64,000 bases of DNA from Blastocladiella emersonii ATCC 22665. Lineage: Eukaryota > Fungi > Blastocladiomycota. The notes beneath the pieces were generated by a model that worked only from the letters and a program-made list of their open reading frames with translations, was not told the origin of the DNA and made no database searches. Positions 31 to 13,490 of this stretch are shown piece after piece. How positions within the stretch are numbered: the first letter of the stretch is position 1; every line of letters begins with the position of its first letter. The stretch is from contig JANHCV010000001.1 of assembly GCA_025594325.1 (NCBI GenBank), positions 2,108,001-2,172,000 of the forward strand, written 5' to 3'. The position numbers and the translations under genes were made by a program.

Positions 31-3000
31 CTAGAGCGCCTTGGCGCTCCGGGTCCCGACCGTCACGGTCGCGCTCCCGACACCATCTTGGCGGTCGGGG
101 GTGGTTGGTGGGTGGGCCGGCGCAGGGGCCGCCGGCGACGTGGCGAGGTGCACCACAGCTGGCGATCCGGCAGCGGCGGCGTGGGCAGCAGCTGCAGGGG
201 GCAGCAGCGACAGGTAGGGGGCCGGTGGTGGCGGGCCAGCGCGCGCGTACGTGGACGCAGGCGAGGGCGAGGGTGTCGACAGCTTGATGGCGGCCGGCGA
301 GTAGGCGGGGGTGCGCGAGGATGAGGGCTCCGACAGCCACGCCAGCAGCGACGATGATGACGGTGATGAGGCGGCGCGCTGGGCGGACGCCGACGGCGAT
401 GGCGAGGAGGGCCCATAGATGGCGTTGATCATGAAGGTCCGGTCCATCTTGCCGAAGCCCATGTCCTCGAGCTTCTTGGTCTCGGCCTTGAGCATGGCCG
501 CCTCGGCAGCTGCCCCAGCAGCAATCTTCTTGGCGAGCTTGGCGTGTGTGGCGGCGCGCGCGCTGCACATGTTGGCGAGGGTGCAGGCCTGGCCATCAAA
601 CTGGCCCCCGCAGTCGGCGCAGTCGAGCTGGGCCCCCAGGGCCTGGTAGTCGTCCATGGGCGCGTCCGAGTCGTAGTCGTCCTCAGCGTCGGACGAGTCG
701 CTGTCGGACGGCACGTAGTCGTCGTCGTCGTCCATGAGGTCCTCGTCGCCGAGGGGCCCGTACCCGTGGATGAGGACGTTGTGGAACACGGTCGCCACGT
801 CGGCCTGGATGTCCTTGAACTCCTGCTCCACCTCGGGCGCGATTGAGATGCGGCCGTCCTCCACGCCCGCTGCGAGCGCGTTGAACATGCGCCGGATGTT
901 GCGGCCAAACTCCTCGGACGCGCTGGCGGCGCCTGCCGCGCGCTCGTTGGCGAGGTCGATCTGGTCCACGAGCTTGGTGACCCGCGCCTTCTGGGCCTTG
1001 ATGGTGGCGGCGGCGTCTGCAGCTGCGGAGGCAGCAGCCCTGGCGTCAGCGGCGCCCGCGCGGCGCTTGCCCTTGCGCAGCGTGAGCTCGGCGGCCTTCT
1101 CCTCCTCGGCGAGCTTGTGGTTGGTGGCGGCGAGGGCCTCGGCCTCGGACTTGGCGCGCTCGGCGCGCGAGCGGGCAGCAGCGGCGTGCGACGCCTCGGT
1201 CTTGGCCTCGGCGGCGGCCTGGCGCGCGGCGGCCTCGGCGGCGGCGGCGTTGGCGACCTGGACGCGCGCGTGCGCCTCGGCCTCCTGCGCAGCAGCCTCG
1301 GCGGCGGCGCGCGCGGTCCCGGACAACCTGGGCGGCAGCTGCCGCAATCCCAGCGAGCGCCGCGGCGGCCTCGCCGTCGCTGGCGCTGCCTGCGGGCGGC
1401 GCGGGCGACGCGGCGGTGGCGGACGACGACGCAGCAGCAGCCTCGTCAGTGCTGGGTGCTGTTGCAGTCACGCCCTCCATGGACTCGGCGCCGTCCGCGC
1501 CCTCGGCGGCAGCAGCCGTAGCAGCGGCGGCAGCACGTACCGCGTCAATCGCGTCCTTGGCGGCGGCGTGGGCCGCAGTGCGCTGGGCAATGGCCTCGGC
1601 GGCGGCGCGCTCGGCCGTGGCGAGGTTGATGATGGTGGTCGCGAGCTTGGACGCAGCGGCCGCTTCCGCCGAGACCGCACCCACCTGGCACGCGAGGGTC
1701 TGGAACAGGGCCTTGGCCTCGGCAGAGGCGGGGCCGTCAGGGAGGCAGCCATACCGGCGGCCGAACGCGGCGAGCGGGCCCTCCTCGCGCGCAGCGGCCG
1801 CGGCGAGGTCGAGCGTCATGGGGAGCGTGGCCTTGGCGAGCGACGACGCGAGCGAGACGGCGGCGCTGGCGGCGCGCGCGGGCGCGGGCGTGGGCGCGGG
1901 CGAGGAGGAGGTGACGACCTTGGACCAGGACAAACCTGGACCGGCGCGACCCGCAGGCGAGACAGTCGCCGACGGCGTGACGACCATGCCGTCGCGCTGG
2001 CGCTTGCGCGACGACGTGGACGTGTTGCTGGCGTTGGAGGGTCGCGACGACGGCGGCGACGGCCTGGGCTTGCGCGTGGAGCGGCGGACCGGGTTGGCGG
2101 GGTTCTCGGCGTTGCACAACGCGGACCAGTGCGCGTTGGACCCGCAGCAGTGGCAGCACCGCTCGCCGTCCTTGCGCAGGAAGACGGACGTGCCCTTCAT
2201 GGGGAGGACGCCCATCCTGAGACCGTCCTGGACGTCCTCGGGCAGCGGCATGCGGACGCACGCAGTGCGCGTCAGGCGCTCCTCGCCCGAGCGGAGCGCG
2301 CGGCGCACGCGCACGCCATGCAGCTTGACGCCCATGCTTTCAAAGTAGTCGTACAGCACGCCCTCGGTGGTGCCGGCGGGCAGGCCGTGGAGCCAGAGCG
2401 AGTTGGGCACCGTGTACCCGCGGCGGTCCTTTTGCACGACTGTGGCGTCGAACGAGATGGCGCAGTCGTTGATGACGGAGCAGCGGACGTCGTGGATGAG
2501 CGAGAGCGCGTCGTGGCGGGGCAGGAGGAGCGACGCGGTGCGGGTGCGACCGGGGTCGGGCTTGTCGAGGGAGAGGAGCGCGGCGCGCGTCTCGCTGCCG
2601 ATCGCGTACTGGACCAGCAGCGACATGAGCAGCTCGCCTGACCACGCATCGGGGACGTTGGAGACGATGACCTTGGCGTACATGTGGCCGACGCGGTTCT
2701 CGGTCGCGTCGCGCGGGACCAGGTCCTGGCCGACCCTGCCGCCGGTGGTGGTGCACTTGGTGCCGGGGCCAATGGGCAGCCCGCCGCGCATGACCCACTG
2801 CGCGGACGCGAGCTTGCGGAAGCGGGCGTGGACGTAGTTGCCGTCGGTCCAGTGCACGGTGCGGACCGAGCGGATGCCTTCGCGCAGGCCCATGTGCGAG
2901 AGCTTGTCCGTGATGAGCTCCTCGACGGTGAGGGACGGCTGGCACAGCTCCTTGGCGGGGGTGCCGGCGGGGCGGACGTCGGCGACGCGGAACGCGAGCG

Positions 3001-3361
3001 TGTACTGCTCCGAGGCGGGGAACGGGTCTTGCGCATGGACGAGTTGGTGCGCCGCGGGCGGGTACTCTTCGTTGTAGAAGCCCTCAGCGGGCGAGGGGGG
3101 AGAGGGGGAGAGGGCACTGTGGAGGGTGGCGTCGGGCCGCGCACCAGCCGCAGCAGTGGCTGTGGCGTCGGTTGTTGATGCTGAGGGCGAGGTGGTCGAT
3201 ACATCCTCGTCCATGGGAGCCGGCGACGACGACAACAACGACGACGACGAGGACGACGTCGCCGTGGTGGCGGCCGGGTCAGGGGGCGCAGGGGTGGGGG
3301 CAGCGGGGCCGCCGTCGCGAGCCGCGACGACGACGCCACCACCACCACTTGACGCCTCCAT
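31..3361 (-). CDS. gag/LINE-ORF1-like protein (three RRM-like segments, CCHC zinc knuckle, Ala-rich coiled coil, acidic/Cys-rich C-terminus), interrupted by one frameshift at ~1318-1320
   Basis: The 1046..3547 frame from ATG 3361 (MEASSGG) has RRM-like blocks (YVHARFRKLASAQWVM; KVIVSNVPDAW; SLWLHGLPAGTTEGVLYDYF) and C-H-C-C-G-S-N-A-H-W-S-A-L-C, which is CX2CX4HX4C. Removing one base from the CCC run at 1318-1320 joins it to the 31..1347 frame (…AQVVR|TARAAAEAAAQEAE…). No RT or integrase is seen in the window. Confidence 0.55.
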
Positions 3362-3467
3362 CTCGAGATTTTTGGAGGGGTGTTGATGCGTTGCGTAGAT
3401 TACGTTGCAGGGAGTGGTGGGAAAGACCAAAGGTGGTATGAGGTCAGCCAGCGGAATGGCGAGAGGT

Positions 3468-3549
3468 GATGGCGTGTCCGAGTGGTCTAAGGAGAATGCC
3501 TTGAAAGCATTTAGGCTTGCCTGCGCAGGTTCGAACCCTGCCGCCATCG
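3468..3549 (+). tRNA. tRNA-Ser(UGA), intact, intronless, with long variable arm
   Basis: Acceptor stem GATGGCG/CGCCATC with discriminator G; A-box TGTCCGAGTGG; anticodon arm AATGC-CTTGAAA-GCATT (TGA at 3502-3504); variable arm AGGC-TT-GCCT; T arm GCAGG-TTCGAAC-CCTGC. Confidence 0.95.
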
Positions 3550-3699
3550 TTTTTGCGCTCTCTGAGGTCCCTAATCATCTTTTAGATCATGCTTTTGGCT
3601 CCAGGGAGTCGAGATCAAGTCGAAAACGCGTCCGGGATGGTCGCTGGCGGCCACGGTCGCCGTGGGCTGACCCCATGCGGTGGCTTGCCCCCTTTTGTT
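3498..3699 (+). repeat. Direct repeat copy 1 (tRNA-Ser 3' part plus ~150 bp downstream flank)
   Basis: 3512-3549 is identical to 10313-10350 (38 nt) and 3618-3653 is identical to 10419-10454 (36 nt). Shorter shared blocks: AGATCATG(C)TTTTGGC, GGGCTGAC, GTGGCTTGC, CTTTTGTT. Confidence 0.9.
3550..3554 (+). terminator. Pol III terminator (T5) of tRNA-Ser
   Basis: TTTTT immediately follows the discriminator base. Confidence 0.8.
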
Positions 3700-4161
3700 C
3701 CACCACCTCACGACGACACCGGCTGTTCTGATTCCACTGAACGTATTCGGGCTACAAACCGGCACAGCAGCAGCAGGGGGACTTGGTGGCGGCAGCGGAT
3801 GCGAGTGATATTCCTTGCCGCGGGAGTTGCATCAACCGCTTCAGCTAGCCCTCGCCGCCCTGGCGCCGCACGTTGAATCAGGCGATGTTGAAGCGCATGT
3901 TTGTGGTGCATTGTTCTTTCAACAAACGAGTATAGAAACGTCCGGATGGGGTCGGGGTTAACGTGTCGAAAGTGGTTTGATCAAGCCTGCTCAAGTCACG
4001 TTGTGGCGCAACGCGTCAATTTCGGCTCGCGCGTCGCACGCTCAATTCACTATCGCCCTATCTGTTCAGCTGTTGTGGTGATGATTGCATCAGAAACCAA
4101 TCACTAACATGTTCAGAAACCCCTTGACGCGTATATTCAAAAAAACCGAAAGACGACCTGC

Positions 4162-6744
4162 TCACTCATTGTGGGAACGGCGCGAGCGTTTCTTACTCGG
4201 ACCACTAGTCCCCGTGGGCGAATCGATGGTACCCGCCACATGCACAACCCTTGGCGCCGAGGGCGTGCGAGAGTTCGATCCAGCAGTCAATGCCGCGACT
4301 GCGCTCGACTGATGAATAACCGGCGAGGGAGCGGCCCCAGCCCAGGCCGGAGCTGTCGCCGGCCGGCTGGGCGTCGAACGTCTCGGAGGCTCGATGAGCG
4401 GCCGGGAAGGTGCGGCATGAGCTAGAAGCTGCTTCTCGCCCACAACCTTGATGACGGCCTTGGTGGCAGCCTCAGAAGCAAGCTCCTCGAGCTTGCGCTG
4501 GGAAATGCAGACGAGAGGCTCGCCGTTTTCGTCAACCAAATCCCGTGCCGCCGGGGCACGACCACGGGATTGCCGAGGACCGTTCCCCAAGCGAGCGGGC
4601 GGCTGCGAGATTGCATTAGAACCGGCGTGCACCTTGGCAGGCGTCGCGGGCGTCGAAAGAGTCGATGCGGCCTTAGGTTCAGCCCAGCAGAGCACGTTAC
4701 GGCCATCGAAGATGGGGTAGTCGCTGGCGGTGCCCGCACGCGTGCACGCCACGTACTTCTCCGATTTGAACGCGGGCAAGTGGACCGCGTTCATCGGAAC
4801 CTCGCCCTTCGATTTGGGCTCGCGCGTCGGTTTGAGCCGAAACCCATACGACGTGTCGTGCCACTGAAGCGAACGAAGCGCATTCGACACCTGGTCGTGC
4901 GTGAACATTTGGTCGGCCGGGCAAAGCTCAATTGCAACAGAGCTGGCCAGACGGCCCATTTCCATGGCACGCAGCTGGCCGTCGGACATGGAGAGAAAAG
5001 GGGCAATGGCCCACACGGTCGCGAAGCGGATGATCACGGCCTTCAAACAGCTGTTGGGATCTGCTGCAAGATCGCGGAGAAGTTTCGTCGCGTCAGCAAA
5101 CACGCCGGGCGGCGGACGGGCAAGTCGAGGTGAGACGTCGTTGCGGTCGTCGTATGAAGGCTTGATGTACATGAGGTCCGCCTCGGTAATGGGCTGAGAG
5201 TTTTCGGGAGCGTAAACGTGGTACAGGGACCAAGCAATCTCGACCGTGACAAGCTCTGCACCCTCACTACAAAAAAAAACAAACGATACAGGTAAGCGAT
5301 CGGGTTTCGAGCGAATTAGGAGCGTATCCATAGCGTACTTGGTCTCCAGGGCAAGACCAAGGTCGTCCAAAGTTCGCTGCGTCTGAACCAGTCCCAAGCG
5401 GCAATTGAGAAAGCAATCGCCGCACAAGAGGTTCGGCACGTTGAGATTGACATTCTCGCGCAGAAATGCCATTTTGAGCCGATGCAGCGATTTGAACTCC
5501 TCGAAAGTCATGTTTGGATCGACTTCGAGGTCCTCGATCTGCAAAACGAAAGCGTAAGGTTTGAGAGGATTGTAAGCGTGGGCAGGTTGGTCCATGATTT
5601 GGGGCAGCAACATGCGCCCAAGAATCTCGTCCACAAAGTCGGGAATGGTCAGGCCGCACCTCCAGTCGTAGACGGCGTGCGTAAGCGCGTAGAGCTCGCG
5701 GCCCCACAACGAGGTTTTGAAGTACTGAGCGCCTCGGTCTGGTCGCACTGCAGGATAGCCCGATTTAGACGTGATGGTTGGCTCGGTGTCGGTGAGGTAC
5801 AATAGAGACATCCGACGCATGTCCTTGAGCAGCCCGGTGAACACGTCACGGTCCGGGAAGGTGAGGGGTGATGGAAAATTGCGTAGCGAGTCAAAATCGT
5901 GGCGGGCGACCGAGCGGATCACGACCTTGCCGTCGAGCGGAGAGCAGTCAATTTCGACACGCGGTACATCGGCCCCTGGCATCGAGTAGCTCGCGGCCGC
6001 GGCCGCTGAAGCATTAGCAAGGTCGGCATCTAGATGTAGAGAGGGAGAGCGGTGAGTGAGATGATGACGCGGAATCCAGGGCTTCTCGCGAGCCGTACCC
6101 ATGGATTCCATAAATGTCTGGTGGGCCGGCAGCACCGACAATTTGGAGGCGACCTCGGCCGAGCCGAAGATCGCGGCCGCATCCGTGGGTGGTCGGTCAA
6201 AGAGCAAGAGCAGGAGCGCGGGTTCGAAGGCCTGGTCGATATAGAACGATGAGAATAAATCGCGCCAAAGTCGGCCGTGGGAACCAAAATGAGCACGCTC
6301 GAGATCATGGCGTGCAGCGAAGTTCATCACAAGCGTCGATGCGAGCGGGAGTTGGGTCAGCCGAGCCGCGGCTGCCCAGTCCCGAACGCCAAAGTCGCGC
6401 GCAAACGTGTCGCGAAGCCCGGTCCGAGAGATGGGGAAGCCAATTAGGGTGGCGGCCGAGCACAAAGATGTGAGGTTCGTGAAATTGACATCGATGACTT
6501 TGAGAGCTGGGCGGTGACGAGACGCGCCAGCAGCGGCGGCCGACGCGGCACCGCCCTCGGTCATGTTAGCATCGGAGCTCGAAGCGGATCCCGGTGCGCC
6601 ACCGCCACCGGAGCCGTTGATGTGGATGCGCATCGCGAGAACGGCAGCCGGCAAGGCAGCCGCCTCGTCAAGATCAGCGCGGCGGGCCTCCGGGACCAAG
6701 CTGCATGGGGGTTGAGTCCTGACCTGATTCATGGTTTGCTTCAT
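4162..6744 (-). CDS. 860-aa intronless orphan protein, possibly TE-derived, with weak RRM-like segments and a C-terminal basic NLS-like KKRSRR
   Basis: Long ORF of complex (non-shadow) composition with visibly lower GC and more A/T-ending codons than neighbouring genes. No DDE, tyrosine-recombinase, HUH or RT motif recognised. Confidence 0.7.
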   Translation of the reverse strand: MKQTMNQVRTQPPCSLVPEARRADLDEAAALPAAVLAMRIHINGSGGGGAPGSASSSDANMTEGGAASAAAAGASRHRPALKVIDVNFTNLTSLCSAATLIGFPISRTGLRDTFARDFGVRDWAAAARLTQLPLASTLVMNFAARHDLERAHFGSHGRLWRDLFSSFYIDQAFEPALLLLLFDRPPTDAAAIFGSAEVASKLSVLPAHQTFMESMGTAREKPWIPRHHLTHRSPSLHLDADLANASAAAAASYSMPGADVPRVEIDCSPLDGKVVIRSVARHDFDSLRNFPSPLTFPDRDVFTGLLKDMRRMSLLYLTDTEPTITSKSGYPAVRPDRGAQYFKTSLWGRELYALTHAVYDWRCGLTIPDFVDEILGRMLLPQIMDQPAHAYNPLKPYAFVLQIEDLEVDPNMTFEEFKSLHRLKMAFLRENVNLNVPNLLCGDCFLNCRLGLVQTQRTLDDLGLALETKYAMDTLLIRSKPDRLPVSFVFFCSEGAELVTVEIAWSLYHVYAPENSQPITEADLMYIKPSYDDRNDVSPRLARPPPGVFADATKLLRDLAADPNSCLKAVIIRFATVWAIAPFLSMSDGQLRAMEMGRLASSVAIELCPADQMFTHDQVSNALRSLQWHDTSYGFRLKPTREPKSKGEVPMNAVHLPAFKSEKYVACTRAGTASDYPIFDGRNVLCWAEPKAASTLSTPATPAKVHAGSNAISQPPARLGNGPRQSRGRAPAARDLVDENGEPLVCISQRKLEELASEAATKAVIKVVGEKQLLAHAAPSRPLIEPPRRSTPSRPATAPAWAGAAPSPVIHQSSAVAALTAGSNSRTPSAPRVVHVAGTIDSPTGTSGPSKKRSRRSHNE

Positions 6745-7037
6745 GGTAGCCAGTTCATCAAGTGGAGCAAGCTGATTCGAAGCCCGACGGCAGATGGGGG
6801 TGGGCGAGGGGAGGCCGACGCGCGGCGCGGCGCGCGGGGGAGGCGCGTCGGGCAGCGTGGTGGCTCACGCGCCGCCAACGTGTCGCCAACGCGTGCTCGC
6901 GCGGGCACGCGTTGCTTTCGCCGCTCCTCTCCCCGCATCGGATAAGGCGGGCCGTACGAAAAGCGGCCGCACCCCCACCACCCCGCGCTCTCCCTCCGGC
7001 CCGTGCGACCGCGTCCACCTCCGGCACTCATCCCGCC

Positions 7038-10007
7038 ATGTCGATGCATCCCCGCCCTCTCCCGAAGCCGCCGCCACCGCCGCCGCCGCCACTGCGACCG
7101 ACGTTCGCGCCGGACACGCCGTCCAAGCTGCGCCGCACCATGATGCGCAACTACCGGCGCGACACCAAGCGGTACTACGCCATGTACCCCGACGCGCCGC
7201 GGCGCGGCTCGCCGTGTCACGGCCGACGACGACAACCGCCGCCCACGCTGCCCCGCGAGCTGTTCCCGCCGCGCCCCAACCTGGCCGGGTGCTCCGCGGC
7301 CACCCGCCGCACTCGGATGCGCAAGTGGTACCGCAAGGTCGCCAGGTGGTGCGGTACGCGCAAGCGGTCGCCTTATGTACGTCATCGTGCACGGCGTCGT
7401 GGCCTCGCTCGCATCGACACCCCACGCTGACCGTGGCAACCCTTGTCTCACACCCATAGCCTGTTCCCCGCGACCTGTTCGACGTCGGCACTCGAGTCGA
7501 CGCGACACCCGACGAGAGAATCGCCTCCCTCGTAGCTCGGCGAGCGCGCATGGTGCGTTTTCGACGCGTCGCGATGCGTCCGCGACGGATGACTGATCGT
7601 TGCTGCCTCCCTCCTCGCTCCTCTCCCTCCTCGTTCCTCTCGCTCGACGTTCCTTCAGTGCGAAAACCCCGACCAGTCGCACCTCATGCTCCGCAAGTCC
7701 GTCGGTGATCAAGATGGACCCGCCCGACTGGCTCCTCGACCAGGCGAGCCGACGGGCCCGGACCCCGCGCTCGGGATCGGCCAAGGCCGGTACGCGACCG
7801 TCGTGGTCCCGCTCGACCAGCTCCTCGCCGACGACGTGGCCGAGGAGGGCGGCGTCGAGAAGCTGCGCGTCGGCATCGCCACCCTGCTCCAGATCCACGC
7901 CGAGGGCGAGCTCGTGCTGTCGATGCACCTCGGCGAGCTCGTGCGCCGCGGCATCCCCATCAACGCCGGCCTGTCCCAGGACCACTTCTACCACATCTAC
8001 ATGGGCGTCAGCTGCATCCGCTCCGAAAATGACGACGAGACCGAGATCGTCCCGACCAAGATCACCTCGGACGACATCCTCAACGTGTCGCTCGCCCGCT
8101 ACCACGAAAAGGTGCGCAAGACGGACCTCCCGGTCCCGTCGCGCAAGAAGCTCTCGGTCGCCCTGCACCTGATGTCGCGCGAGCGCTGGACCAGTATTGT
8201 CACGGCGGCGAACCTGCGCCTTCTCGACGGTCGCGCCGCCATGGCCGTGCAGATCCGCGCTCGCTGGACCCGCGCCTACAAGCTGGTCCTCGCTCACGCC
8301 GCAGAGTCGGGCGAGCCCGTGCCGGAGCCGACGACCGCCTACTTCCTCAACCTCGACCTCGCGCAGTTCGCCGACGAGCTCGACCAGCGCTGCTCGCGGG
8401 CCGGTACGCTGTCCACGGCGACGATCGAGGCCATGGACCGCGCCGTGTGGCAGCTCATGGCCAATGTCGGCGCCTACTTGTACGACGAGAACAGCAGCGA
8501 CAAGGAGAAGCCCCTCGCCCTGCTCGACTCGTACATTTGCGCCATCGACCACCTCAAGTCGACGTACCACCTCTCGGCCTCGTTTCTGCGCCCCTCGCTC
8601 ATCCCTCTCGCCGAATCATTCGATCGCTTCATCCGCCTCAACCTGCACGCCCTCACCAACATCCTCAAGCTGTCGTGGTCCGAGTTCAAGGGCACCAAGG
8701 GGCTCGCCAAGGACCCCGCGGTCCTCAAGCGCCTGTGGGACGCCAAGGTCAAGGCCGCCGAGAAGCTCATCAAGCCCAAGTACATCTACTCGTACGACCA
8801 CGCCACCAACTCGTTCACGAACCTGTTCTCGGGCGCCATGTTCGTCGACCGCGAGACGGCGCACCTGGTCATGTACCGCGGCGGCATGCTGCCGAGTAAC
8901 AGCGGCGCAGCGGGAAGCGCCGCCGTCTCGCGGGCGCGCACGCTCCAGGAGCGCGCCCGCGAGCTGCGGCAGGCCAACCGCCCGCCGCCGACGCGAATCC
9001 GCGTCCCCGCGGGCAACCTCATCCTCGCCGCCGACCCGGGTGGGACCAAGATGGAGACGTGCCTCGTCATGACGCCCGAGAAGGCGCTCGAGCTCAAGCA
9101 CATCACCGAGCACTCGATCGACGCGACCCAGCACGCGGCGTCGGCGGGCGCGACGGCCGCGGACATGGCGGCCGCAGTCGATGCGCAGGCGGTGAGTCGC
9201 AGCAGTGTCGGTTACGTGGTGTCGACGCGTGGCGGCGTGCTCGGCGACTTCAAGTTCGTCGACTGGACGCCCGGCGCGTGGCACCAGTACGCCGGCGGCC
9301 GGCTGGCCCAGCAGCTCAAGAAGAAGTGGCTCGACAAGAACGGCCTCGACGAGGCGTACCGCCTGCTCAAGGAGTCGGCTGCCAGCGACCACAACCGGTC
9401 GACGGTGCCCATCGAGGTGCGCTCCCAGAACATGAAGGTGCTCCTCGCGGCGGCGCTCTGCCCGCAGGTCGGGTGGCTGCGCCGCACCAAGATCGACATG
9501 CGCAACCGCCTGCTCGACCTGTTCGCCGTGGCGCTGCGCGGCATCACGGTGCTCTTCGGCCACTGGTACCAGTCGGGCATGTTGCGGCTCAAGTCCAAGG
9601 GCCCCGTCAAGGAGTTCCGCGACGAGATGAAGCGCCGCGGCGTCGACATCCACATCGTGGACGAGGCGTACACGAGCAAGCGATGCGCCGCGTGCTGGTC
9701 GGCGCAGCGCGGCGTCAACGGCGACTCGTTGGCCAAGGACGGCGCCTTCGACCTCAAGAACCGCGAGTACGAGGAGGACGGCGTGATCAAGAAGGAGCAC
9801 CGCGCCGTGTACTGCCGCACGTGCAAGCGCCACTACAACCGCGACCGCAACGGCGCCGCCAACATCTTCTTCAAGACGCTCCACCTGCTCGACTTTGACC
9901 AAGCCGTCGCTCCTGCCCCGCACGACGACGACGACGGCATGGACCTGGACCTGGACCTGTCCGACTTCGACATGGACGACTTCGACATGGACGACGATTT
10001 CGACTAG
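7038..10007 (+). CDS. Fz1: Fanzor (Fanzor1-type eukaryotic TnpB homolog, RNA-guided endonuclease); predicted exons 7038-7376, 7460-7552, 7659-10007 (~926 aa)
   Basis: RuvC-I ILAADPG (D at 9033-9035); LFGHW; RuvC-II IVDEAYTSKRC (E at 9663-9665, just upstream of the zinc finger, the Fanzor-type rearrangement); zinc finger CAAC…CRTC; RuvC-III NRDRNGAANI (D at 9843-9845). Two phase-0 introns (GTACGT…GCTGAC…CATAG; GTGCGT…CTGAT…TTCAG) join the exons in frame. Confidence 0.9.
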
Positions 10008-10089
10008 GTGTCGCTCGACTCGTGTACCTCTCCTCCTCATCGCTCTCCTGTGTGTCGCACTGCTCGTGTACCTCTCCTCCTCGCTCTCC
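10008..10089 (+). repeat. Imperfect ~44-bp tandem duplication directly after the Fanzor stop codon
   Basis: CTCGTGTACCTCTCCTCCTC occurs at 10019-10038 and 10063-10082, each preceded by GTGTCGC and followed by GCTCTCC. Confidence 0.8.
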
Positions 10090-10144
10090 CACTCATAACC
10101 TCCCCTCCCCTCCTCTCGCTACTCTCTCACACCCAAACCCACAA

Positions 10145-10260
10145 GGGTGACAAGTGTGCGGCAGGTGTCTCCGCGCGGGAACCTGGCTTTGCGTGTTCCC
10201 TGATCGGTTCTCTATTAGCAACCGCATGGGTGACATTCAAGACGAACTCTACCCTCAATA
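10145..10260 (+). ncRNA. Candidate Fanzor omegaRNA (scaffold plus guide)
   Basis: Lies 140-250 nt 3' of the Fanzor stop, where omegaRNAs are normally found. Stems: GGGAAC(10177-82)/GTTCCC(10195-200), CGGTT(10205-09)/AACCG(10220-24), alternative CAGGT/ACCTG and GTGCGG/CCGCAT. GGGTGACA occurs twice. Boundaries are inferred. Confidence 0.4.
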
Positions 10261-10287
10261 CATCCTCCATCACCTCCCTCATCAAAC

Positions 10288-10350
10288 TTCGCCTTGAAGC
10301 CTTGAAAGCGAATAGGCTTGCCTGCGCAGGTTCGAACCCTGCCGCCATCG
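10288..10350 (+). pseudogene. 5'-truncated tRNA-Ser(UGA) (anticodon arm to 3' end), followed by TTTT
   Basis: TTCGC-CTTGAA-GC-CTTGAAA-GCGAA, then 38 nt identical to the intact tRNA including B-box GGTTCGAACCC (10329-10339). The acceptor 5' strand, D arm and A-box are absent. An 8-bp tandem duplication GCCTTGAA is present. Confidence 0.85.
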
Positions 10351-10503
10351 TTTTGTGCCCTCCAGGCTTCCTATATCATGTCTCAGATCATGTTTTGGCC
10401 CTCGGGGGAAGGAGATCGAGTCGAAAACGCGTCCGGGATGGTCGCTGGCGGCCAAGGTGAGTGGGGGCTGACTCCCCGGCCGTAGTGGCTTGCTTCTTTT
10501 GTT
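10291..10503 (+). repeat. Direct repeat copy 2 (tRNA-Ser 3' part plus ~150 bp downstream flank)
   Basis: Same blocks as copy 1 at 3498-3699, in the same orientation and ~6.8 kb apart. Confidence 0.9.
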
Positions 10504-10856
10504 ACGCCCATCATCGGCCTGAAACAATCTCGCTTCCTTGCTTTCTCCGCTCGGGTTTGCCTTGGGGGGTTCAGGCTGGATCCAGAGTTCGGGTGGGATT
10601 CTGCGACGGTCGCTGGCCCCGAGCGAGATTCTGCTCAAGTGGGCCAACGTGGGCCTGAGTGCGTGCGGCATCGCGAATCGCATCGTTATCTTTATCGGTC
10701 GGCTGCCGGCTTTGAGGTTTGTGGGGCTTGCTGTTGTTCCCCGCCCCGCCGAGATCGCCGAGCCCCCTCGAGTTCCATCTCCGCTCTCCCTCCCACGACG
10801 ACCGCTGTATCACCCCCTACTCTCGACTCACACGTCCACACGACCCACCACTCTTG

Positions 10857-12571
10857 ATGAACGCTGCCTCTGCCATCCCGCCACCGCCTGCAGCCGCCGG
10901 AGCGGCGGTCGCTGACGCGACCACCGCTACTCTTGTCTCCACCACGATGCCCTCTGCGATGCCGGCCCAGACTCCGATGCCCGCTGCGACGGCCGTGCCG
11001 ACCCAGCTTCCGATGCAGCAGCCCGCCGCGGCGGATGCGCCCGTCTACGCCGCCGGCGGTGCGCGGCAGGCGACCACGTCGTCCCGCCGTGTGCTGCCGC
11101 CGCCCGACCACCCCGTGTCCGGCCGCAACCCGTCGCTGCAGGGGATTCGGTGCATCAACTGCCTGACGTCGACCACGCCGCTCTGGCGCCGCACTCCGGA
11201 TCAGGAGGTGTGCTGCAACGCCTGCGGTACGGTCTCTTCTGCTCCTGTTGTGTCGAGCGGAGGAACGTCCGTTTGCTCACAACCTCGCCTCTCCCTGATT
11301 GATGAACGTTTAGGCCTCTTTTTCCGGCATCACAACCAGCACCGGCCCATCACGCAGGCCGAGCGCGAGGCCAACGTGCGCGCCGCCAATGGTGGCGATG
11401 GTGGTGCCGATTCGGTCCCCGCCGCGGTCCCTCGCAGCCCGTCCCCTTCAGCGCAGGGCAGCAGTGCTGCGGGCGCCGCGACCACCTCGCCGTCGTCGCT
11501 GCCCTCGTCGTCCTCGTCGACGCCCGCCCCGCTCGAGGCGGGTGCCGTGCCGACTGCGCCTGCCGCCGTGCCAGCCAGGTCGTCGCCCCTCGCCAACGCC
11601 TCGGTCGTCGTGCCGCCTGCGGCATCGACGCAGGTCCCGAATCCGAATTCGAATCCGATACAACACGCCGCGGCGGCGGCGGTCTCGCTCCCGCCGCTCC
11701 CGCCCGTGCCGGCGGCGCCTGCTGCTGCCCCCGTCCCGGCAGCCGCTGCTCCGGCGCCTGCCCCCGCTCCGGCTTCAGCCCCGGCGCCCGCGCCCGCGCC
11801 CAAGGCGACCGAGTACCAGGCCGTGTGCAGCAACTGCGGCACCACAACGACGCCGCTGTGGCGGCGCGACACCGAGGGCCGGTGCATCTGCAACGCGTGT
11901 GGCCTGTACTTCAAGCTGCACGGCGTGCACCGCCCGATGCAGCTGAAAAAGTCGGTCATTAAACGACGTAAACGCTTACCGACGTCCAAGGAGCAGACGG
12001 GCGCCAACAAGCGCTCCAACACGGGCTCGGATCGCGCCAGTAGCTCTGGGAGCGGTGGCGGTGCACGACGTAACGGCGGCGGGGACGGCCGCTCGGGCCT
12101 CTCGCCGATCGCCGAGGGCGGTAACGCCGCCGACTCGGCCGCGTCGACCCCGCGCGGGCACGGCGGCGTCGAGGAGGCCCTGCTCTCGCTCGCGTCCGAG
12201 CCACGGCCCGGCCGCACCCCGCCCATGTCGGCCCTGACCGAGGGGTCCGCGTACGGCGGCGGCGCTCCCCAGCAGCAGCACCCGCAGCAGCACTTCCACC
12301 AGCACACGGTCCAGGGCAACTACCACGCCCAGCCGCCGCAGCAGCCTCAGCAGCATCACCACCACCACCACCACGTCCAGGCGTACCAGCACCCGCACGG
12401 CCCACCGGCCCCGCCGCAGCACGCGCAGCAGCACCCGCAGTCCAACGGCGGCGCGTACCACCACCCGGCGTCGGCGCCCAGCGGCCGCCCGTACGGCCAG
12501 GTCCAGTCGCCCCCGCCCGCGCAGCAGCCCACCGGCCCGTCGCCGTACGGCCAGACGCTCCCGCCGCCTCC

Positions 12572-12606
<35 letters not shown>

Positions 12607-13490
12607 CGCAGCAGCTCCAGTATGGCCAGCCGGTGCACCACCAGCAGCAGCAGCAGAGCCATCACGGCCACCACGGCCAGCACATGCACCAGCAGCAACA
12701 GCAGCCGTCTCACCACGCGCACCACCACCACGCCCAGCCGCAGCAACACGCGCAGCAGCACCACGGCGGGCACCACTACCCGCAGCAGCAGCAGCAGGCG
12801 CCGCCCGTGTCGCACCTACACCCGTACCCGCCGGCGCCCGCGAACGCGCCGACGGCCGCGCCGCTGGTCCCGTTCCCGCCCATGACAGTGAACCCGCTCG
12901 GCGGCCGCGGCGGTCGTCCGACGCCCGTGATCCGCACCCTGCCGCCGCCGCCGGGGACCTACCCGTCGACGTTCACGGGCCGCGGCGGCGCGGCCACGCT
13001 GCCGAACGAGCTGCACCGCGGGCTCCTCGTCGCGCACGTCGAGTCGCTCGAGCGCATGCTGCACGAAGCGCGCGAGTCGCTCGCGCGGTGGGACGCGGCG
13101 AACCCGGCCGCCGCGGCGGCGGCAGCAGCGGCGGCAAGCTCGCAGCCGCAGCAGGGCGTCGCCATGCTCCCTGCAGCGGGCCCGTCGACGCTCCCGCCGA
13201 TCCTGCTCCCGCACCCGAACGGCGGTGGGAGCGGGGGTAGTAGTTCTGGGGGATCGGCGCTCGGGCTGCGGCCGCCGTCGGACCCGGTCCCGCGCGCGTC
13301 GCCGCCGACTGCCGCGGTCGAGGGCCAGCAGCAGCAGCAGCAGCAACAGGCTGCGCGGCCGCGGCACCACAGCGGGGCCAAGACGCCGGCCGAGCTCGTG
13401 GGCAACAACGGCGGCTTCTCGAGGCCGGACTCGCCGTCGTCGTCGCAGCAGGGCCAGCAGCAGCAGCTCCCGCGGCACTCGATGATGTGA
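10857..13490 (+). CDS. GATA-type transcription factor with two C4 zinc fingers and a Q/H/P-rich C-terminus; intron 11227-11313
   Basis: [26 protein letters not shown]|LFF and [50 protein letters not shown]. An 87-nt in-frame GT-AG intron splits finger 1. Confidence 0.9.

Follow-up and report, generated by a model that had tools for sequence, protein, structure and literature searches.

Duplicated tRNA-Ser segment around a Fanzor gene

A Fanzor1-like gene and an orphan open reading frame (ORF) of Blastocladiella emersonii ATCC 22665 (assembly GCA_025594325.1, contig JANHCV010000001.1) are bracketed by two repeats in direct orientation, each of which contains all or part of a tRNA-Ser(UGA) gene and its 3′ flank. 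Coordinates refer to the 64-kb stretch of this contig that was analysed (the window); the comparisons between loci cover one genome, and the read contigs one sample. The chances appear about even that these repeats represent old paralogs of one host segment, comprising tRNA-Ser(UGA), a conserved block and the 5′ part of a GATA factor gene, and that they were generated by partial tandem duplication. An old host duplication is suggested because the homology is collinear over more than one host feature, running from tRNA position ~27 through the flank to zinc finger 1 of the GATA gene. This reading accounts for the repeats; the origin and timing of the 6.4-kb interval that carries the orphan ORF and the Fanzor gene lie outside it. 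The left copy (tRNA-Ser plus flank) is denoted L, the right copy R and a third copy, located elsewhere in the genome, T. The features of the two repeats, with lengths in nucleotides (nt) and amino acids (aa), are as follows.

3467..3550, plus strand: intact tRNA-Ser(UGA) gene of L (ARAGORN; Rfam RF00005, 57 bits at 3468-3549), anticodon stem AATGC/GCATT, followed by a run of five Ts
3551..3705, plus strand: left 3′ flank, defined by sequence comparison, with the 47-nt block at 3611-3657
3828..3888, plus strand: remnant of GATA zinc finger 1, reading CINRFS*PSPPWRR, collinear with the flank; the homology to R ends at 3888
10288..10350, plus strand: 5′-truncated tRNA-Ser(UGA) fragment of R, from tRNA position ~27 to the end, anticodon stem TTCGC/GCGAA, 8-nt duplication at 10291-10306, followed by a run of four Ts
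10351..10503, plus strand: right 3′ flank, with the 47-nt block at 10412-10458, ending in ATGGTCGCTGGCGGCCAAG and then GTGAGT
10959..13490, plus strand: host two-finger GATA factor gene of the SreA/URBS1 type (Pfam; NCBI annotation, 814 aa), finger 1 at 11151-11211

The integrity of the two copies is complementary: the tRNA gene is intact only in L and the GATA gene only in R, and flank and finger 1 follow one another collinearly in each copy. Truncation affects the 3′ side of the left repeat (at 3888) and the 5′ side of the right repeat (at 10288), and 6.4 kb of unique DNA lies exactly between these two points. The duplicated segment would extend from tRNA position ~27 to GATA finger 1, the left copy being short of ~520 bp in between.

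Intact tRNA-Ser gene and its truncated paralog

The tRNA-Ser(UGA) gene at 3467-3550 on the plus strand is the sole tRNA gene called by ARAGORN in the window, and a permissive-threshold Rfam scan of positions 3000-11000 returned nothing besides it; the right fragment (10288-10350) was called as a tRNA by neither ARAGORN nor Rfam. BLASTN aligned 3498-3699 with 10299-10503 in the same orientation (81% over 208 nt, E = 2e-45) and detected no further copy of the tRNA-plus-flank repeat within the window. The initial annotation of this DNA had described an intact tRNA-Ser(UGA) with only its 3′ part and a homologous flank 6.8 kb downstream, and this arrangement is confirmed. The suspicion that the duplication might be an assembly artefact can be set aside. 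A 6705-nt Logan contig derived from DNA reads of the same sample corresponds to 3624-10328 with 0 differences and spans both junctions, its depth matching that of the adjacent DNA. Both junctions are real, because this independent contig crosses both of them, and repeats with 80% identity are too unlike each other to have misled the assembler.

The R fragment opens at 10288 with TTCGC, the 5′ strand of the anticodon stem, and contains GCCTTGAA twice as an exact 8-nt tandem duplication. After removal of this duplication, the fragment comprises 55 nt that differ from 3495-3549 at six positions, which constitute three compensatory base pairs of the anticodon stem. Outside the stem, the two copies are identical (45/45; P = 3e-6 under 25% neutral drift, the yardstick for all probabilities given here being the ~25% divergence of the GATA finger 1 remnant described below). 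The earlier remark that both anticodon stems are self-complementary and yet differ therefore holds, and two differing stems of this kind agree with two tRNA paralogs that were long functional. No displaced copy of the missing 5′ half of the R tRNA (first 26 nt) was found within the window, and no homology was found between the sequence upstream of the L tRNA gene and that upstream of the R fragment. A full-length tRNA-Ser gene with the TTCGC-type stem is probably present elsewhere in the genome, because a separate contig joins the complete 5′ half GATGGCGTGTCCGAGTGGTCTAAGGAG to TTC-GCCTTGAA. The loose-end strings of this contig and of the T contig were absent from all loci examined.

Conserved block and copy number of the repeat

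The flanks of L and R are unevenly conserved. The 47-nt block is identical at 45 of 47 positions (3611-3657 vs 10412-10458; P = 2e-4 under the same drift), whereas the flank is identical at 36 of 56 positions before the block and at 30 of 48 after it. A 30-nt core of the block (10425-10454) is invariant in L, R and T, the flank sequence of T having been rebuilt from contig difference tables, and the surrounding flank is 62-65% identical. Since the tRNA body and the block were conserved while neutral parts drifted by ~25-35%, both appear to have been kept by selection in both copies. The simplest reading of these sequences is that purifying selection acted on the tRNA body and the block in L and R for most of the time since the duplication and that R was truncated only recently. 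A tRNA-linked 47-nt block conserved in three copies is one of the results from this locus that should be of lasting use.

The 47-nt block had no match in Rfam. A structured RNA in the flank was considered on account of RNAalifold helices with compensatory changes and was dropped, the column-shuffle z-scores being -0.55 and -0.51, and -0.08 when T was added. At the end of the block in R (10438-10462), ATGGTCGCTGGCGGCCAAG followed by GTGAGT resembles a start codon plus a consensus 5′ splice site, and no splice site is present in L; the GATA gene may have a first exon here that is missing from the annotation.

Copy number was examined with Logan contigs from 4 DNA runs of the same sample, placed on 4551-10550 at a likeness of at least 80%. 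The depth of the flank is accounted for by exactly three contigs (L, 135.6; T, 172.3; R, 117.4; together 425.3), and the T copy of tRNA plus flank has single-copy depth. Because these three contigs account for the whole flank depth, the tRNA-plus-flank unit is a three-member family and not a short interspersed nuclear element (SINE). The fear that it might prove to be an abundant dispersed SINE is thus refuted, with 3 copies at an identity of at least 80% in the whole read set; the copies are few, and the L tRNA is canonical, with a T-run directly after it. Pairwise flank identities are 80% (L-R), 85% (R-T) and 75% (L-T), so that the longest branch leads to L and the shortest to R. These branch lengths would agree with constraint that was relaxed on L and persists on R, upstream of a live GATA gene. 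A placement of R as the sister of T was withdrawn, as three sequences yield only an unrooted star with unequal branches.

Decayed GATA finger in the left copy

The segment at 3828-3888 matches 11151-11211 over 61 nt (75% identity) and is collinear with it. The local alignment score of 47 lies above all 300 real-sequence controls (mean 26 ± 3.8; maximum 40). Of the two fingers of the downstream GATA gene, only finger 1 matches the remnant, in the same order and orientation relative to the flank; finger 2 gave no match. Judged from its sequence, the remnant is neutrally decayed by ~25%, because its 15 mismatches in 61 nt are spread over the three codon positions (7, 5 and 3, respectively) and a stop codon is present. 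No homology was detectable between flank and finger (3701-3827 vs 10504-11150). GATA paralogs were also tried as a path to the third locus and abandoned, the search having returned only orthologs from other fungi.

Proposed history of the repeats

The repeats may be explained by three steps. An old partial tandem duplication of the region comprising the tRNA gene, the flank and the 5′ part of the GATA gene would have come first. Redundancy would then have been lost in a complementary fashion, L keeping the tRNA gene while its GATA copy decayed and R keeping the GATA gene. Much later, a break and rejoining in the right tRNA gene would have removed its first 26 nt and joined the Fanzor tail at tRNA position 27. 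Templated short duplications near a breakpoint are the kind of scar that end-joining repair leaves, and such repair probably produced the truncation: a scar-like templated duplication of 8 nt lies 3 nt from the breakpoint. The orphan gene probably arrived after the Fanzor gene. One of the two possibilities raised in the initial annotation, a tandem unit whose second tRNA was truncated, survives in part: tandem duplication is retained, and the unit proposed at that time (minus-strand ORF, tRNA and flank) is replaced by one of tRNA, flank and GATA 5′ part, the ORFs being dissimilar.

Several points weigh against this history. The link between the flank and the finger remnant rests on collinearity and a single 61-nt match. 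The junction of the duplication coincides with the 6.4-kb interval, and a single event of duplication plus insertion would be more economical than two events. The conserved block shows no RNA-structure signal. Gene conversion with other tRNA-Ser loci could have preserved the R fragment and the L block, an alternative that would need two separate short conversion tracts. Finally, the comparison covers a single genome.

Orphan-Fanzor interval

The unique DNA between the two repeats is organized as follows.

3889..4161, no strand assigned: spacer of ~52% GC from the finger remnant to the end of the orphan ORF, without homology to the right copy
4162..6744, minus strand: orphan ORF of 860 aa, not annotated at NCBI; GC content at third codon positions (GC3), 0.67; single copy
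6745..7037, no strand assigned: spacer between the divergent orphan ORF and Fanzor gene, GC ~75%
7038..10007, plus strand: Fanzor1-like gene H9P43_000783, 926 aa, three exons, PF07282; GC3, 0.94; single copy
10008..10287, plus strand: pyrimidine-rich 3′ non-coding tail of the Fanzor gene

Both genes had been noticed in the initial annotation, and both are present: the Fanzor assignment was confirmed by Pfam PF07282 and its ORF is identical to the annotated H9P43_000783, and the minus-strand ORF of 860 codons lies at 4162-6744. The C-terminal TNB/zinc-ribbon domain of the Fanzor protein matched PF07282 with E = 3e-10 and 40 bits (cut-off, 26.3). Its CxxC...CxxC zinc ribbon is kept and is invariant in an alignment of 11 family members, and the motifs of the split RuvC domain (DPG, VDEAYTSK and NRDRNGAANI) fall on the D, E and D columns, which are invariant or nearly so, when the protein is aligned with ten relatives. 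The protein is very divergent. Only 37 proteins in 1.8 billion matched at E < 1e-3, no close paralog suitable for a flank comparison or for a covariation analysis was found among them (best non-self E = 3e-18), and a PDB search yielded a marginal match to SpuFz1 only. From these features, we infer a long-resident, host-adapted and catalytically intact-looking gene, a candidate for a nuclease that has been domesticated or has long been resident. This Fanzor gene, which is very divergent, present in a single copy, interrupted by introns and apparently intact, is a further result of lasting use.

The 280-nt tail of the gene, in which the scaffold of a Fanzor guide RNA would be expected to lie, showed no unusual folding (z-scores, 0.06 and -0.25), no Rfam match and no similarity to the tails of paralogs. 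At its start, two 31-nt direct repeats with 90% identity are present (10008-10038 and 10052-10082). The core of these repeats, CTCGTGTAC, is the complement of the stretch that encodes the VDEAYTS motif (9656-9678), a match no better than that expected by chance.

The orphan ORF found no match in Pfam, PHROGs, a word-indexed homolog search, the ESM Atlas, viral contigs or an exact look-up, and its single-sequence AlphaFold2 model was unusable (predicted local distance difference test score, 33). The possibility that it is a copy of the minus-strand ORF upstream of the left tRNA gene was rejected, as the two share no sequence similarity. A match of the T contig to orphan positions 5111-5154 (44 nt, 7 differences) is probably a chance similarity of GC-rich sequences and was given no weight. 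The GC3 of the orphan ORF (0.67) contrasts with that of neighbouring genes (0.84-0.94), whereas the value of the Fanzor gene (0.94) compares with 0.84-0.91 in host genes. Because their GC3 values differ in this way, the two genes probably did not arrive together recently.

The depth of the orphan ORF and the Fanzor gene equals that of their surroundings (135), indicating a single copy, and the right flank is no deeper than the interval. In this one sample, the contig depths point to neither an empty allele nor further copies of the interval; no contig joint bypassing the interval was reported, in a contig placement that took in one repeat at a time. Apart from the TNB domain of the Fanzor protein, no domain was found in the interval, and specifically no recombinase or transposase domain (Pfam, and PHROG for the orphan). 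No terminal repeats, direct or inverted, were found either for the whole interval or for its two halves taken separately.

An association between Fanzor genes and tRNA genes was checked at seven further loci of this genome that carry Fanzor-family genes (L002-L008). At none of them was a tRNA gene present within 5-6 kb, and a tRNA-Ser fragment, the flank and a homolog of the orphan ORF were absent from all seven. A literature search likewise found no report of a Fanzor-tRNA association.

Retroelement-like insertions upstream of the left tRNA gene

Immediately upstream of the left tRNA gene, the minus strand carries two elements in tandem, at 193-6447 of a longer extract of this locus (L001, the coordinates of which are those of the window plus 2963; window ~-2770 to 3484). 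The first 14-15 nt of the left tRNA were found twice more, at L001:193 and L001:2829, followed in each case by homologous element ends, so that both elements are bracketed by the first 14-15 nt of tRNA-Ser. They share a common end, AGAACAA...GAGCTCATCGAAC...GGAGGGACAACAGTATGCGGACACACGCGCT, and their genes are an RNase H gene and a gene for a 1099-aa protein, which ends at window position 3361 on the minus strand. This organization indicates the repeated insertion of an element that is apparently specific for the 5′ end of tRNA-Ser and that would regenerate the tRNA gene. Because copies of the tRNA 5′ end bracket both upstream elements, tRNA-Ser genes do serve as sites of insertion in this genome. 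This clear example of retroelements inserting repeatedly at the 5′ end of tRNA-Ser should likewise be of lasting use.

Retroelements targeted to tRNA genes include the tRNA gene-targeted retroelements (TREs) of Dictyostelium and Ty3 of yeast. The two upstream elements, with the 14-15 nt of the tRNA-Ser 5′ end on either side, resemble this type of targeting. The truncation of R does not: the upstream insertions occurred at tRNA position 14/15 with the tRNA regenerated, whereas R is broken at 26/27 without such duplication, and the orphan-Fanzor interval shows no similarity to the upstream elements.

Alternative explanations

The repeats could instead have been produced by an integration of the Campbell type, in which a circle carrying the orphan ORF, the Fanzor gene and a captured host segment (tRNA position ~27 to finger 1) entered by one homologous crossover, leaving the tRNA gene intact and the GATA part truncated on the left, with the reverse on the right. 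We regard this as unlikely. The topology is exactly that of a single crossover, with the left copy cut at the 3′ end, the right copy cut at the 5′ end and unique DNA between them; one event suffices, and two different self-complementary stems would likewise result if the crossover lay 3′ of the anticodon stem. The same direct duplication around unique DNA and reciprocal truncation of the copies are seen with integrative plasmids in fungal transformation. Here, however, the copies are ~80% identical, and their conservation points to long separate function rather than a recent common origin. The passenger segment has decayed by ~25% in the finger remnant, yet the tRNA fragment and the block were spared; recombination between DNAs with 80% identity is inefficient; and the orphan ORF and the Fanzor gene have very different GC3 values. 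The interval is moreover single-copy, and the contig depths show no sign of circles or empty alleles.

L and R could also be two of three independently dispersed members of the tRNA-Ser-plus-block family that lie 6.8 kb apart by chance, the finger match being coincidental or unrelated. T lies elsewhere and is as similar to R as L is, and the stretch from flank to finger shows no detectable homology, both as would be expected from dispersal. Against this stands the finger match, which scores above all 300 controls, involves finger 1 specifically and keeps order and orientation unchanged between the copies, and the idea is accordingly quite unlikely.

A third possibility is an event linked to the Fanzor nuclease itself. 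Fanzor guides, like those of obligate mobile element-guided activity (OMEGA) systems, are encoded just beyond the right end (PMC13565253). The tRNA fragment occupies this guide position, beginning 280 nt past the stop codon on the same strand, and the nuclease could have been guided to TTCGC-type tRNA-Ser genes, the truncation and the scar resulting from its own cleavage or from homing; the B box and T-run of the fragment might serve to express or terminate a guide RNA. The catalytic D-E-D residues and the zinc ribbon are conserved, and the fragment is far better preserved than neutral DNA. The folding of the tail is unremarkable, though, and the tail resembles none of the paralog tails; the Fanzor gene is single-copy while an apparently intact TTCGC-type tRNA gene persists, and none of the 7 other Fanzor loci is near any tRNA gene. 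Such an event is very improbable. Narrower still, and a slender prospect at best, is the proposal that the divergent Fanzor protein uses the tRNA-Ser fragment as a portion of its guide, or as an RNA polymerase III B box plus terminator, to target tRNA-Ser genes, with the unusually good preservation of the fragment, the break at 26/27 and the 8-nt scar as its traces. If the guide reading were true, the locus would encode a eukaryotic RNA-guided nuclease aimed at tRNA-Ser genes.

Fanzor1 transposons (PMC3627910; bioRxiv 10.1101/2024.09.03.611062) resemble the gene described here in their TnpB-like protein with a TNB/zinc ribbon and RuvC triad and in the presence of a non-coding tail at the guide position. 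In contrast to these transposons, no transposase partner, terminal repeats, target-site duplication or second copy was found here, and the gene contains introns and has an extreme, host-like codon usage. Arrangements consisting of a Fanzor gene plus the right end only, without a transposase, have been described in a Chlamydomonas giant virus (bioRxiv 10.1101/2024.09.03.611062).

The other proposal of the initial annotation, a Fanzor-carrying element that integrates site-specifically into tRNA genes, is scarcely credible. Such an element would act like the bacterial islands that rebuild the tRNA at one end and leave a 3′ fragment at the other: an intact copy and a 3′ fragment are indeed present in direct orientation and tRNA-Ser genes are demonstrable insertion hot spots in this genome, but the proposal failed every test run (repeats, recombinase, termini, copies and Fanzor-tRNA association), as the homology extends at least 150 nt beyond the tRNA gene and into the GATA gene instead of forming a short core like that of an attachment (att) site, the repeats are old and unevenly conserved with L and R no closer to one another than to T, no recombinase or transposase domain and no terminal repeats were found in the interval, the interval is single-copy, and 7/7 other Fanzor loci are without a tRNA gene. 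The likeness to bacterial tRNA islands and prophages, bounded by attL and attR, lies in the intact tRNA gene and 3′ fragment in direct orientation with compositionally odd DNA and an orphan between them. The differences are that no integrase was found, that the repeats run far past the tRNA gene into the flank and the next gene and are old and uneven, and that the interval is single-copy, of mixed composition and located in a eukaryotic nuclear locus. If true, a tRNA-integrating eukaryotic Fanzor element would represent a new and notable type of mobile element. What is observed points instead to ordinary processes, namely duplication of a tRNA gene plus flank, decay of the redundant copies and a later break, and the locus should not be cited as a tRNA-targeting Fanzor element.

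Other Fanzor-related sequences in the genome

A 371-nt contig, the depth of which is ~2.4 times that of single-copy DNA, aligns with 60 nt of the Fanzor gene in the part that codes for RuvC-II and the zinc ribbon (9636-9695; 8 differences). Because of this match at elevated depth, the contig shows that another, putatively multi-copy Fanzor family of this genome has the RuvC-II/zinc-ribbon motif in common with H9P43_000783 at the DNA level. At one of the seven other Fanzor-family loci (L003:2296-7602), a 470-aa Fanzor paralog is arranged head-to-head with a gene for an 894-aa protein without a Pfam domain. This pair resembles the orphan ORF and Fanzor gene described here in its arrangement, and the 894-aa gene has no sequence similarity to the orphan ORF. 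At another (L006:1301-2527), a gene with a weak match to Plavaka, an EnSpm-like transposase, is located 2.5 kb upstream of the Fanzor paralog.

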